In this document: piece by piece, positions 28,865-44,662 of the stretch
How the letters are laid out: every line of letters begins with the position of its first letter
How positions within the stretch are numbered: position 1 is the first letter of the stretch
Assembly: GCA_002269645.1 (NCBI GenBank)
Contig: NIVC01001219.1
Location: 1 to 64,000 of the forward strand
Length of the DNA stretch: 64,000 nt
Direction of reading: 5' to 3'
Origin: Macrostomum lignano
Lineage: Eukaryota
Translations under genes and position numbers: made by a program
Notes under the pieces: model-generated
Seen by the model: only the letters and a program-made list of their open reading frames with translations
Told to the model about the DNA's origin: nothing
Databases searched by the model: none

Positions 28865-31800
28865 ATGCTTCGGTCAGCAATTTTGGTGTGCCTTGCGGCC
28901 GGTAAGTGTTAGATACACCGATTCGGTATAGCACGAAATAGCTTCTCAACTCACTTTGCAGCGGAAATGGAAAGTATCAGAGAACCAGCAGCCAACTAGG
29001 ATGCAAGTAGTCATGCCCGTTTCCCTGACACCTAAGCTCACACACGCTCATGCATACGTACTCCCCACGGAGTGTACTGAGGACCTGACTTTCGCATCGG
29101 CTGGTACTATACATACTCGTATTCTCTGAGGGTGGGCTCTCACGGGTATATAAATCACACCCAGGTGAAGCCCATGAAAGCCCTATGATTTTGAGTTGCG
29201 TACTCGTTATCAATCCAAATGACCACGTGGCTAAAGAAGGATCCAACTACAGCTAGAGGCTTTGCAGAAAGTGAAATTACCTTAATGAGGCGTTTTACCA
29301 GCTCGAATTTCACCTCCTTAGAATATAGAATCTTTCACAAGATCAACACTTCACCAGCCGGAAATGTCACATTGTTGAAATCTCAGCAATTTGATGCTTG
29401 GAGCTTGTGAATCGCATTTTTCTGTTTGACCGAATCAGCCAGCTCGCAAGTATTCGATTGCAAATTACCTAATTGCTAGGAAGAGAAAAGGTCAATCGCG
29501 GGAATTAATATAATTGTTTCTCCTCGTTGTTTTCGCGGAGTCCCGGAGCCTAGAGCAGGCAGGCTTTAAGCATCGCTGCAGGCTATTAAGTCAATATTAG
29601 CTGGATTATATCTGAAGAAGATCGGGGTTGGGGGGTCTCTGCCATGCGCAGTGCTTTTTGGACTCAATTTAATACAAGTCGCTTGCGTGATTGATTGATA
29701 AGGGAAGTGAATTGTAGTATAAGCTAGAAGGCTAAACGTGCCCCAAGGAAGGTGGGGTTGAAGGTCGATTTGCACAGGCATCATTACCAATGTCCTGAAC
29801 TCTTAGATGCATGATAAGAGCGCTGCATCAGCCCAGTACAATGGGAAATGACTGGCACGAGGGCTCACGCTCCCGAGTATCTGTTGCATTGTTTGGCCTC
29901 TGCAAGGCCAGCTCTCCCGAACAGCATAGAAGAATTGCAGCTGCCTCGGGGAAACGTTTGTCCCACGGAGAATTGGGAAAATCCACTGGGACTATTCCCT
30001 TCAAAAACAACTCAGAAATTTGCTTGGCGACCTCGCCGTGACCTGAATCCGTTCCCACACCCAATTGTTAAGCTGTATCAATTCCTACCACAATAGTTTT
30101 TAAATCTTACAAATCGATAAAGTCGAATCGAAGCCGGGGCAGATTAGGAGAATTCAGGTCACGAGTCGGTAAATCCCAAGCGACTTACGCCTACTAAGCT
30201 GACAAAGTTTCCGAGAAAGCAAAGCTGCAGGCAAATGGCACTTCCATGTCACAAGTCGCGGACTCACTGATCGATTAAGCTTCTCTGCATCTCTGCAGCT
30301 CCCAAAAGTCGAATAAGATGAAGAAATTGCGCTTCTTTCATTCGCTGATCGATGCGAGCTCATTTGCTTTAGCGTTCAGTGAGAAAAGACCAGGCTAAAT
30401 AAGTTGTTTTGATTTTTTAAAAACAAAAGTAGTTTTACACCAATGACTGGATGAAATTGTTGCAATGAGCGTCCTTGGGCAGATTAAACCATGTAAAATT
30501 CACAATTCATAAGCTCCCTAACATCTTAACAAACCTAGGAATAAAAGCCAAGTATATGTAACTCGTATTCTGATTTTTCAAGCCTAATGTGACTATTTAA
30601 GACTTTAATCCTCATTTATCACTTTCCAGCAATCTGCACCAATCAGCAGATGGTCGTGGCCAGTCAGACGCCTGAATACGTGGTGACAACCATACTGGTG
30701 AGCTTCTGCTCAGGCTGAGTTTCATATCCGCTGTTAGACTAACCAGAGTTTCCTTTTTAAAAGATAAAACCAATGAGACGCTCAATTTCCCTTGCAGTTG
30801 GAGGGCTTCGCTACCCAGGACATCAACGGGCGCTGGATCGGCTTCTTCCCCGACCTCATTACCGAGCTGGCCGGCCGGCTGGGCTTCCGGCCGGACATCC
30901 GACGAGTTCCGGACGGACGCTACGGCAGCTACAACAACTCCACCCGCAGCTGGGATGGCCTCATCGGCGAGGTCTACGACAAGCGGGCCGACTTCGCCGC
31001 GGCCCCACTAACTGTCACCGCCTATCGCGAGGAATCCGTCGACTTCTCGCACGGCGTACTCAACTTCGGCCTAGTCGTGGTCGCCCGCCCGGCCAAGTGG
31101 ATCAACGTTGCTGTTCGCCGCGGGCCCGCCTTCTTCCTGGCTGTGTTCGACGTCTGGGTTTGGCTCGCCTGCGGTGGACTGATGCTGCTCACCAGCCTGC
31201 TGCTGTACTGCAACTCGCGCTGCAATCCGCGCGAGCTGGAGGACCTGTACCTGTTTGGCGCAGTCTGCGCCACTGTTCGCTGCCAGGGTGCGTGCTGCTA
31301 CGGTGTGTGTGTGTGTGTGTGTGTGTGTGTGTGTGTGTGCATGCACTTATTTACTGATGCCCCGTCATAACCGTCAATCTCGTGGTCAAGTCTATATTTC
31401 CAGCTGGCAGGGCAGTTGAAGGTCGTCAGTCGTTTCTTCATCGTGTAGTACGAGTAGTCGACGCGATGCCAGCAGAAGTTGCTGAATAGGAAGTTAGTCA
31501 CACTCGGGCATTGAATTCGATTTATGTAGCTCGTATTTGAGAATTCCCTTATAGAACAATGTGCACTTGAGTATTGTGCCTGTACATTGCTTCGATGTAC
31601 ATTACAAATAAGCAAGGGCGTATGGTAGAATAGACTGCAGATTGCAGAGCCTACGTTTATTGTCCTCTTGCTTCCCGAGTCAAGCGAGGTGTCTTTTGAG
31701 GTCGAAAGAATGGCCGAATCTTGAGCGCCTGCCTCTTCAACCGCCACTTTCCCTCGTTGTTTCAGTAAATTATGTGCATCTCACATGCCCCCATCTCTTC

Positions 31801-43200: not shown

Positions 43201-44662
43201 CCACCGGATTTCCCTGCACGACACCGCAGCACCAGCTGCCTGTGGTCGCCAGGGGTTCACAAAAATTCCCAAACCCCCCTGCAGCTAAGTCAGAACTGGT
43301 GATTAGGTGGCCCAGTACTAGCTAGCTGGTTTCTAGAAAGGACTCAAGGTCTCTAGAAATGACTCAAGGTCTCTAGAAGGGACTCAAGGTGTCTAGAAGG
43401 GACTCAAGGTGTCTAGAAGGGACTCAAGGTTTCTAGAAAGGGCTCAAACTCTCTAGAAAGGACTCAAGGTATCTAGAAAGGACTCAAGGTCTCAAGAAGG
43501 GACTCAAGGTGTCTAGAAGGGGCTCAAGGTCTCTAGAAGGGACTCAAGGTCTTTTGAATGAATGAAACTCTTGATAGTAACAGCCAGGAATTAAGTCCCC
43601 GACCCTCCGGGCCGTCGAGATATAAAAAAATTCTGCTAGAAAGTCGAATTTTTCCTTAAGCGCTAGTGAATTCAATACACCATTGTGCGCCAATCAGCCC
43701 TGACCATCCTTGCCAAGCTTCATCAGCTCTGACTGATCAGCTCTGACTGTGGGGCAAACCTCAACTGCTAAATATCCTCAGCTAGTCTGCTCAACCAATC
43801 TGTCATCATCCCGACGCCGTCGGCACCTTGAAAAATTGCCCTAGGTGACTCTAGAATCGTTGAATATCTCGACGTTCCGGAAGCCTAACGAATTGATTCT
43901 TCTTTGAGAAGAGGCGCGTGACTGCGTTGCTTCGTTCCAGAGTCCTTTCTAGAGACCTTGAGTCCCTTTTAGAGACATTGAGTCCCTTCTAGAGACCTTG
44001 AGTCTTTTCTAGAGACCTTGAGTCCTTTCTCGAGACCTTTCTCGAGACCTTGAGTCCCTTTTAGAGACATTGAGTCCTTTCTCGAGACCTTGAGTCCTTT
44101 CTAGATACCTTGAGTCCTTTCTAGATACCTTGAGTTCTTTCTAGAGACCTTGAATCCTTTCTAGAGACCTTGAGTCCTTTCTAGAGACCTTGAATCCTTT
44201 CTAGAGACCTTGAGTCCTTTCTAAAGACCTTGAGTCCTTTCTAGATACCTTGAGTCCTTTCTAGAGACCTTGAGTCCTTTCTAGAGACCTTGAGTCCTTT
44301 CTCGAGACCTTGAGTCCTTTCTAGAGACCTTGAGTCCTTTTTAGAGACCTTGAGTCGTTTCTAGAGACTTTGAGTCCTTTCTAGAGACCTTGAGTCCTTT
44401 CTAGAGACCTCGAGTCCTTTCTAGATACCTTAAGTCCTTTCTAGAGACCTTGAGTCCTTTCTAGATACCTTGAGTCCTTTCTAGAGACCTTGAATCCTTT
44501 TTCGTGAAACCCAGAGCAAAGAAACAATCAGGAAATTTTAAAACAACAGTCCTTTGGCCTTACCTCGATAACTGCAACTTGAAGTGTCTCAGCATTTGCA
44601 GGACCAGCCGGCATCAAACACAGCAGCGTCCAGAGAGCGATCGGCAATCCAAATATAAGCAT
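37212..44662 (-). CDS. Ionotropic glutamate receptor-like channel, paralog B (538 aa, no ATD); exons 44662-44564, 42722-42411, 42202-41953, 40711-40089, 39650-39480, 37373-37212
   Basis: Signal peptide [24 protein letters not shown], then ETLQVAVIE|LEGFCMRD...WSGLIGEV...[22 protein letters not shown]1, [41 protein letters not shown]2 (SNTHRFF, VMESTM, NSYAFAF) and M4. Junctions are phase-consistent GT-AG and three intron positions are shared with paralog A. The terminal exons are less certain. Confidence 0.9.
37453..37716. mobile_element. hAT-Charlie-like MITE with GA-rich interior
   Basis: CAGGGGTC left end and GCGGGCCGGTGTTTTCCAACCCCTG right end. No TSD found. Confidence 0.45.
38354..38690 (+). 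mobile_element. tRNA-derived SINE family B, in the last intron of iGluR B
   Basis: Colinear and highly similar to 32104-32467. Confidence 0.85.
39150..39325. repeat. ~31-bp tandem repeat (AACTATCAAAGCTCAGAGGGGAATT..CAGT)
   Basis: About 5-6 imperfect copies. Confidence 0.8.
39661..40070. repeat. (GATA)n microsatellite filling an iGluR B intron
   Basis: About 100 GATA units inside the 438-bp intron 39651-40088. Confidence 0.98.
40768..41905. repeat. Composite 20-24-bp minisatellite (GTCTCATACAGACAGGTACCACT / AAGTGTCAGACAGACAGGTAC)
   Basis: Fills nearly all of intron 40712-41952. Confidence 0.95.
42770..43160 (+). mobile_element. Decayed non-LTR retrotransposon ORF2 3' fragment (C-terminal CCHC zinc knuckle)
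   Basis: Across frameshifts it reads [59 protein letters not shown]. This matches the RRDxRxxxxxxxGH..CxxC(x7)H(x4)C pattern of I/R1/Loa-type LINEs. Confidence 0.7.
43331..44500. mobile_element. Foldback-like structure: two inverted arrays of a 20-bp unit flanking a ~390-bp spacer
   Basis: 43331-43552 is (GACTCAAGGTCTCTAGAAAG)x~11 and 43940-44500 is its reverse complement x~28. The repeat structure is certain; mobile status is inferred. Confidence 0.6.

Follow-up and report, generated by a model that had tools for sequence, protein, structure and literature searches.

The locus considered here raises the question whether two adjacent genes of the free-living flatworm Macrostomum lignano encode ionotropic glutamate receptor (iGluR) subunits that lack an amino-terminal domain (ATD) altogether and, if so, to which kind of receptor such subunits belong. 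The genes, termed A and B, lie within the first 64,000 nucleotides of contig NIVC01001219.1, a stretch referred to as the window. A preliminary description based on these letters had proposed a convergent pair of iGluR-like genes, and this was borne out: A and B are paralogous (41% protein identity), lie on opposite strands tail to tail and are, according to tblastn, the only iGluR genes in the 64-kb window. In both products the order of elements is signal peptide, S1, M1, P-loop, M3, S2, M4 and a short tail. They possess the bipartite ligand-binding domain (LBD) that is interrupted by M1-P-M3 and followed by M4, as is characteristic of the iGluR superfamily. We consider it probable that the two genes encode ATD-less subunits of this superfamily whose assembly, ligand binding and gating proceed as proposed below.

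Exons and splice junctions of genes A and B

Gene A extends on the plus strand from 28865 to 34578 and comprises five coding exons. Its spliced product of 492 amino acids (aa) is 100% identical to the UniProt entry A0A1I8J329 (P0001, 492 aa), an identity which also supports the very short exon 1 (28865..28901). This exon provides the start codon, 12 signal-peptide codons and one further base (MLRSAILVCLAA) and is followed by a GTAAGT donor at 28902. Exon 2 (30630..30697), lying between a TTCCAG acceptor and a GTGAGC donor and matched by the family profile hidden Markov model (HMM), encodes the end of the signal peptide and the first S1 strand (AICTNQQMVVASQTPEYVVTTIL); it ends with QTPEYVVTTIL, while exon 3 (30798..31287) opens with LEGF. 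Exon 3 contains S1 including PLTVTAYREE (Pfam Lig_chan-Glu_bd, E = 4e-23), M1 and the start of the pore loop and ends in phase 1 within VRCQ/G. A (CA)n run is located just past its donor (about 31305-31340). The rest of the pore loop, M3 (AYAGGFLCTLVAS), S2 (GGST, VMEA, KSYGLA) and M4 are encoded by exon 4 (32681..33477), and the C-terminal tail SSSADQPKPPSEGAAGVALTTAVPIAED with the stop codon by exon 5 (34492..34578). The last exon was identified by tblastn with residues 464-492 of P0001 (100% identity) and is joined through a GTGACT donor and a CTTCAG acceptor.

Gene B is located on the minus strand (44662-37212) and consists of six coding exons. The product of 525 aa differs from the NCBI protein BOX15_Mlig002294g4 (P0009, 525 aa) by two substitutions, P103L and V383L. 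Exon 1 (44564..44662; family HMM E = 1e-4), which has a GTAAGG donor, encodes the signal peptide and, directly thereafter, ETLQVAVIE as the first S1 strand. Five codons ahead of the ATG there is an in-frame stop. Exon 2 (42411..42722) opens with LEGF and covers S1 (Pfam Lig_chan-Glu_bd, E = 3e-24), exon 3 (41953..42202) contains M1 and the start of the pore loop (STGCFQ/G, phase 1), and exon 4 (40089..40711) the pore loop, M3 and S2 with the motifs NSNT, VMES and NSYAFA. The end of S2 and M4 are encoded by exon 5 (39480..39650), which ends with RYERYK. Exon 6 (37212..37334), preceded by a CTGCAG acceptor, contributes the C-terminal tail to DDQQQLSP and the stop, matching the end of P0009.

All nine introns of A and B are of the GT-AG type and in phase. 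Three intron positions are common to both genes: one of phase 0 before LEGF, one of phase 1 in the pore loop (following CQ/G in A, FQ/G in B) and one of phase 0 behind M4. The preliminary description had placed the gene starts and the junctions YVVTTIL|LEGF (A) and VAVIE|LEGF (B) correctly; it had estimated about 490-540 aa for the S1-M1-P-M3-S2-M4 products, for which the corrected models give 492 and 525 aa. Its statement that a signal-peptide exon is spliced onto S1 is right as to the junctions, but in gene A two small exons, not one, encode the signal peptide. The gene ends had to be revised. The first models of A and B ended at the stops of long open reading frames (ORFs; 467 and 510 aa) and were dropped, as the comparison with P0001 and P0009 shows one more 3′ exon in each gene (A 34492-34578, B 37334-37212). 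The 3′ ends are about 2.6 kb apart, not 5.9 kb.

Absence of an amino-terminal domain

The lack of an ATD, claimed earlier from the upstream ORFs, was corroborated by negative searches of the two products and of the 64-kb window on both strands. The products of A and B gave no match to the Pfam family ANF_receptor (PF01094). A tblastn search of the window with the N-termini of 67 relatives having at least 250 residues before S1 yielded a best E value of 0.039, which is at chance level because 67 queries were used. With an HMM of 55 ATDs, run with filters off against all six-frame stop-free segments of the window (20 aa or longer), the lowest E value was 1.8. The family HMM served as a positive control and found all exons, even the short exon 1 of gene B (33 aa). 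An ATD exon was found neither within the 28.8 kb upstream of A nor within the 19.3 kb upstream of B, and the same ATD HMM had no hit at the NCBI loci of B and of the paralogue P0004, for which 10-kb flanks were included. A and B do not have the LIVBP-type ATD of about 400 aa that is typical of canonical AKDF receptors.

One candidate fragment was considered and discarded. At 11838-12014 (+), the sequence QNFHTPLIKPAFPK was matched by three ATD queries (ATD motif NNFQIPLISPSFPE). The match comprises only 14-25 aa with E values of at least 0.04, lies in hydrophilic surroundings of low complexity, has no flanking ATD exons and scored E = 16 with the ATD HMM.

Protein architecture and fold

Both N-termini show the n/h/c pattern of signal peptides with a hydrophobic core (mean Kyte-Doolittle hydropathy 1.9-2.25), so that the signal peptides supposed earlier are supported by hydropathy. 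In A the signal peptide reads MLR-SAILVCLAAAIC-...VVA|SQ; in B, cleavage is predicted by pattern before ET. S1 starts at about residue 26-28 in A and B, and the predicted cleavage would leave approximately 3-5 residues before the first S1 strand. The signal peptide would thus be removed and the LBD clamshell would start almost at once.

Pfam recognized Lig_chan-Glu_bd (PF10613) in both proteins (82-86 bits), SBP_bac_3 (PF00497) spanning S1 and S2, and Lig_chan (PF00060) in B with 63.6 bits. Hydropathy peaks for M1, M3 and M4 exist in both. The closest solved relatives are LBD-transmembrane domain (TMD) chains of AMPA receptors (E = 1e-47 for B, 1e-35 for A), and the alignment to them begins at about residue 439 of the GluA2 precursor, i.e., within S1. 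An AlphaFold2 model of B has a mean predicted local distance difference test (pLDDT) score of 80; the LBD and M1/M3/M4 are mostly above 85, and M4 forms a helix from 454 to 487. Foldseek likewise assigned this model to GluA1-4 LBD-TMD chains as best PDB matches (E = 1e-27, target TM-score up to 0.72). In sequence and fold, the best PDB matches are thus AMPA receptors, and A and B share the S1-M1-P-M3-S2-M4 core with GluA1-4 and the AKDF group in general. They differ from them by the missing ATD, the low identity of 27-30%, a very short C-terminal tail and, as described below, by residues of the pocket, gate and pore.

Ligand-binding site and pore

Five Macrostomum proteins, namely A, B and the database entries P0003, P0004 and P0010, were aligned to GluA2. 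In all of them T480, R485, T655, E705 and Y732 are kept, and position 653 is Gly or Ser. The binding triad pointed out in the preliminary description (Arg in AYREE/ALREK, Thr in GST/SNT, Glu in VMEA/VMES) does align with R485, T655 and E705. The motif MESTM of B resembles LESTM of GluA2. Two cysteines of B, C363 and C419, are conserved across the family; they are taken as the counterparts of the LBD cysteines C718 and C773 of GluA2 and presumably form a disulfide. The position of Y450, on the other hand, is occupied by Phe or Leu in the Macrostomum proteins. According to a published selectivity rule, Gly, Ser or Thr at 653 together with T655 and Y732 indicates glutamate and not glycine or D-serine as ligand (bioRxiv 10.1101/2024.06.25.600656). 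Since the residues at 653, 655 and 732 fit this rule, a glutamate-type pocket is predicted for A and B. Judging by the six conserved positions, the clamshell probably binds an alpha-amino acid, most likely glutamate.

The M3 gate has diverged considerably. Instead of SYTANLAAF, A contains AYAGGFLCT and B SYTAAFLCA, and the consensus of the Macrostomum proteins is [AS]Y[AST][AG][AG]FLC.LVA. The Lurcher alanine is replaced by Cys in all five proteins. Substitutions of this alanine are known to push iGluRs toward the open state. Proteins with a Cys at this position may thus reasonably be expected to gate differently. The Q/R site is Cys in A, Phe in B, P0004 and P0010, and Val in P0003; except in P0003, it is followed by a conserved Gln. 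We propose that the subunits assemble via LBD and TMD into tetramers, possibly also as heteromers of A-type and B-type subunits, and that ligand binding would gate, or at least modulate, a cation pore. Its gating and permeation may be non-canonical, because the Lurcher alanine is a Cys and the Q/R site Phe or Cys.

Transcript, selection and a second locus

A transcript contig encoding a B-type protein (L001) was found in Logan (run SRR28338165, which is not tied to a species). It is intronless, 1863 nt long, and encodes 529 aa with 72% identity to B. A 68-nt leader precedes the signal peptide; since it contains no in-frame stop, the 5′ end of L001 is not strictly proven to be complete. The contig reads ...KTLNVAVIELEGFCM..., colinear with the exon 1/2 junction of gene B, and the tail encoded by exon 6 is conserved in it. 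At codon 103 of gene B (42414-42416), the window has Leu, the NCBI copy Pro and L001 Ala. Between B and L001, the nonsynonymous (dN) and synonymous (dS) substitution rates are 0.21 and 1.0, respectively (dN/dS about 0.2), pointing to purifying selection on B-type genes.

In the NCBI assembly, the exons of gene A are found at 24037-20055 (-) of NIVC01001306.1 (L002), with 98.9-100% identity for exons 3-5 (tblastn). A second pair exists on NIVC01001569.1 (L003), where the B-type gene of P0004 (11380-15435, +) and the A-type gene of P0003 (22084-19017, -) are also arranged tail to tail. A and P0003 are 64% identical, B and P0004 43%. As the convergent arrangement is the same, the A/B pair was duplicated as a unit long ago with its orientation kept. 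This fits a co-regulation or co-assembly of A-type and B-type subunits, though it proves neither.

Six public Macrostomum models of the A/B family are faulty (P0002, P0003, P0005, P0006, P0011 and P0012). The C-terminal ~200 aa of P0003 are an antisense read-through of P0004 exons, P0011 represents B with a frame shift and bears the name 'Calpain catalytic domain-containing protein', and P0012 is a chimera.

Relatives and phylogenetic position

When 1.84 billion representative proteins were searched with a profile of the five Macrostomum proteins, 7329 matches were obtained. The best 150 of these were pooled with earlier matches (n = 156). In this pooled set, 64 of 156 proteins are of the short type (less than 620 aa, less than 60 residues before S1), while in 67 the part ahead of S1 measures 250 residues or more. 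Outside Macrostomum, the closest relatives lack an ATD as well and are about 430-560 aa long. Named short proteins of the set belong to Nemertea (Lineus, Tubulanus), Mollusca (Aplysia, Babylonia, Haliotis, Ostrea, Ylistrum, Pecten, Liolophura, Acanthosepion), Brachiopoda (Lingula), Annelida (Owenia), Hemichordata (Ptychodera) and Vertebrata (Ascaphus and Megalops 'glutamate receptor U1(-like)'). The name 'glutamate receptor U1-like', given by NCBI to several relatives, denotes proteins of the vertebrate kainate-binding protein (KBP) type. Nearly all short relatives have kept the Arg and most of them the Thr and Glu of the triad; all exhibit a degenerate M3 and a hydrophobic Q/R site (W, L or F) followed by Gln. 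The exact motif YTANLAAF occurs in 66 relatives, most of which bear an ATD.

These data alter two points of the preliminary description. The architecture, which it implied to be unusual, recurs in ATD-less proteins of several phyla, and full-length mollusc ionotropic receptors (IRs) without an ATD have been published from Biomphalaria (BglaIR3, 517 aa; BglaIR5, 506 aa; PMC4890853). The best matches of BglaIR3 and BglaIR5 lie in the same short group. The IR/iGluR reference sequences of PMC12837371 include the Aplysia member XP_005107294. Furthermore, a lineage-specific family had been assumed, while in fact only the divergent Macrostomum clade itself is specific; it is 25-30% identical to anything else. 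A further search, with a profile of 35 sequences, returned only Macrostomum proteins and added nothing.

The phylogeny consists of a crude, unrooted neighbor-joining (NJ) analysis (145 sequences, 391 trimmed columns, 200 bootstraps) of proteins pre-selected by similarity to the query family. The Macrostomum clade emerged as distinct (87% support), with 100% for the A type (A and P0003) and 32% for the B type. It does not stand alone: in 200 of 200 replicates it was on the side of a split without any YTANLAAF protein, and approximately 45 ATD-less spiralian and hemichordate proteins were on this side in about 95% of the replicates. Four ATD-bearing proteins with a degenerate gate, including the Saccoglossus 'glutamate receptor 3-like', were also located there, and the vertebrate U1 proteins P0007 and P0096 joined in about 50% of the bootstraps. 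Because the tree is unrooted, the ATD-less assemblage might represent a grade, or its members might group together through fast evolution common to them. We place A and B in this assemblage, which is large and has been little described. Its members are AKDF-like subunits without an ATD whose SYTANLAAF gate is degenerate; mollusc 'IRs' are among them, and the vertebrate KBP/'U1' proteins are close by.

The GluA2 core scored 131 bits with A and 165 bits with B, whereas the Epsilon sequences GluE1/2_Sko, taken from the supplement of PMC6307864, reached 101-106 (A) and 130-133 bits (B). Due to the higher GluA2 scores, A and B look AKDF-derived, as IRs are thought to be. Membership in the Epsilon class was rejected in view of these scores and since GluE_Sko keeps the canonical gate YTANLAA[FY]. 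In the large iGluR phylogeny from which the Epsilon sequences stem, the ATD is never mentioned in the main text (PMC6307864), and four accessions of the short set that were looked for in its data files are absent there. With the bacterial GluR0, A and B share the lack of an ATD and an LBD interrupted by the pore module. They are not of the GluR0 type, which has no M4 and a K+-channel-type selectivity filter, as the Macrostomum proteins possess M4 and the iGluR-type pore loop QG...P[KR]SL. A bacterial relative (P0008, 364 aa) was a distant match only.

Alternative interpretations

Could A and B simply be protostome IRs, i.e., ATD-less tuning subunits of peripheral sensory cells that need a co-receptor of the IR25a/IR8a type and detect environmental chemicals instead of a transmitter? 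We regard this as a possibility worth keeping in mind, albeit not the likely one. The host is a protostome, and no recognisable ATD is present in A or B. With at least four loci, the family is a lineage-specific expansion. The mollusc IRs (BglaIR3, BglaIR5, Aplysia IRs) are likewise ATD-less proteins of about 500 aa from spiralian hosts which have a degenerate M3, form lineage-specific paralogue sets and belong to the same similarity neighbourhood, into which the NJ tree puts the Macrostomum clade. IRs have been distinguished from iGluRs by the loss of at least one residue of R/T/(D/E) (PMC4890853). By contrast, A, B, P0003, P0004 and P0010 retain the equivalents of R485, T655 and E705, hence the full binding triad, and also Y732. 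The region before S1 differs as well. It comprises about 200 aa in typical IRs but essentially nothing, namely 3-5 residues, in A and B. Most IRs have only a short N-terminal region without homology to an ATD (Croset et al. 2010, PMC2924276), so that the 'reduced, divergent' ATD which the preliminary description ascribed to tuning IRs does not apply to most of them.

The preliminary description also left the KBPs out of its list of known ATD-less cases. These vertebrate proteins of about 50 kDa (frog, chick, fish; about 460-480 aa) have a signal peptide, no ATD and a preserved triad, and with 492 and 525 aa A and B would by their predicted sequences fall into the same category. It is conceivable, but in our opinion rather unlikely, that A and B are KBP-like, meaning that they bind ligand without being channels alone and serve as binding, modulatory or obligate accessory subunits. 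Not only size and architecture agree with U1 (461-482 aa) but also the hydrophobic residue followed by Gln at the Q/R site and the non-canonical M3. On the other hand, the identity of 25-30% is no higher than that to ATD-bearing AMPA receptors, U1 joins the assemblage in only half of the NJ bootstraps, the model of B shows the pore helix, M3 and M4 at high confidence, and purifying selection acts over the whole gene length.

A trivial explanation would be that the short products are artefacts of gene modelling, with ATD exons farther upstream or on another scaffold, or that the genes are 5′-truncated pseudogenes. Many Macrostomum database models of the A/B family are clearly wrong, as illustrated by the C-terminus of P0003, and neither the frame upstream of the A start codon nor the 5′ untranslated region of L001 is closed by a stop. 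Nevertheless, this explanation is very improbable. A signal-peptide-like segment directly before S1 would make no sense after an ATD, the B reading frame is closed five codons before the ATG, and the neighbouring gene on the upstream side of B, which encodes a DEG/ENaC channel, lies on the other strand. ATD signals are absent from the window and from the 10-kb upstream flanks at two other loci, four paralogues start in the same way, as do dozens of relatives from other phyla, and the dN/dS ratio is about 0.2.

Several observations weigh against our preferred interpretation of A and B as ATD-less, ligand-gated subunits. For gene A, the frame upstream of the ATG is open for 112 codons (28529-28864, +) and holds two more Met codons, so that a longer N-terminus without similarity to an ATD is possible. 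An exact-sequence search for a gene A transcript found none, no gene is called at the matching locus of NIVC01001306.1, and the sole gene A model in databases is an older one of the UniProt/WormBase type. Transcript support concerns B and comes from L001, whose run is not tied to M. lignano. The Pfam Lig_chan score of A, 24.1 bits, is under the gathering cut-off of 30.8, a fact that also favours the KBP-like alternative. The Leu at codon 103 of gene B takes the position of GluA2 P478 within the ligand-contacting APLT motif. By their sequences, the gate and Q/R site are so diverged that A and B might not conduct alone; frog and chick KBPs are reported not to do so. Finally, the grouping with other ATD-less proteins may reflect shared fast evolution because it stems from NJ only and from sequences pre-selected by similarity.

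A more far-reaching proposal, which we consider quite unlikely in its entirety, is that the ATD-less, triad-keeping proteins of about 430-560 aa with a degenerate gate from Platyhelminthes, Mollusca, Nemertea, Brachiopoda, Annelida and Hemichordata, perhaps together with vertebrate KBP/U1, constitute one ancient bilaterian class of 'minimal' glutamate-binding iGluRs outside the AKDF/NMDA/Epsilon/Lambda scheme, partly captured as 'IR'. In Macrostomum, an obligate A-type/B-type heteromer, its gating altered by the Cys at the Lurcher position, would then be kept as a convergent gene pair.

Other features of the window

Two motif hits that might have indicated further paralogues, LEGF at 56520 (-) and SYTA at 22736 (+), are due to chance. 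DEG/ENaC exons (Pfam ASC) at 56466-56852 and 61697-62152 (+) are oriented divergently from gene B; at the equivalent place, the NCBI record calls a 710-aa ASC product. On the other side, an exon for the N-terminal domain of Meis/PKNOX, a TALE homeobox gene, is located at 5801-6343 (-) (Pfam E = 2e-28), perhaps together with 4314-5003 (-). Between this exon and gene A, no Pfam-recognisable gene was found, and ARAGORN detected no tRNA genes in the window.

Minisatellites are very dense, with 16 arrays of a TRF score above 300 in 37 kb, periods of 18-53 bp and up to 63 copies. Arrays are located at 23980-25505, 33613-34220, 35536-36876, 40767-41911, 43328-44500, 45344-46836, 47430-48421, 49253-50313, 51118-51823 and 55764-56462; several of them fall within gene B (introns 1 and 3) and within the spacer that separates the 3′ ends of A and B (34579..37211, about 2.6 kb), most of which consists of 53-bp and 21-bp arrays. 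These repeats give rise to many long spurious ORFs. Tetranucleotide microsatellites were found in intron 4 of gene B ((AGAT)x102, 39662-40071) and at 52406-53001 ((ATAG)x149). There are also two dispersed elements. One of 250 bp is present at 27181-27430 and, inverted, at 62872-62621 (92% identity), the other of 330 bp in intron 3 of gene A (32126-32456) and in the last intron of gene B (38373-38690; 82% identity).

Implications

The finding alone does not change current understanding. The architecture is widespread and familiar from tuning IRs, from mollusc IRs that lack an ATD, from the KBPs of vertebrates and from GluR0. Public databases already contain A and B, listed as uncharacterised. 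What deserves attention is the combination of complete binding residues with a Cys at the Lurcher position and Phe or Cys at the Q/R site, the duplicated convergent pair, and the large, under-classified assemblage to which the proteins belong. ATD-less, triad-keeping proteins form a large set across Spiralia and a hemichordate, some of which are filed under 'IR' in mollusc studies, and a proper phylogeny of this set would tidy the classification of iGluRs and IRs. If functional, A and B would be natural 'ATD-deleted' glutamate-type receptors in a tractable, transgenic flatworm model. It could then be tested how tetramers assemble and choose their partners without an ATD, how gating and permeation respond to Cys in place of the Lurcher alanine or to Phe/Cys at the Q/R site, and whether the conserved convergent A/B pair acts as a heteromer pair.

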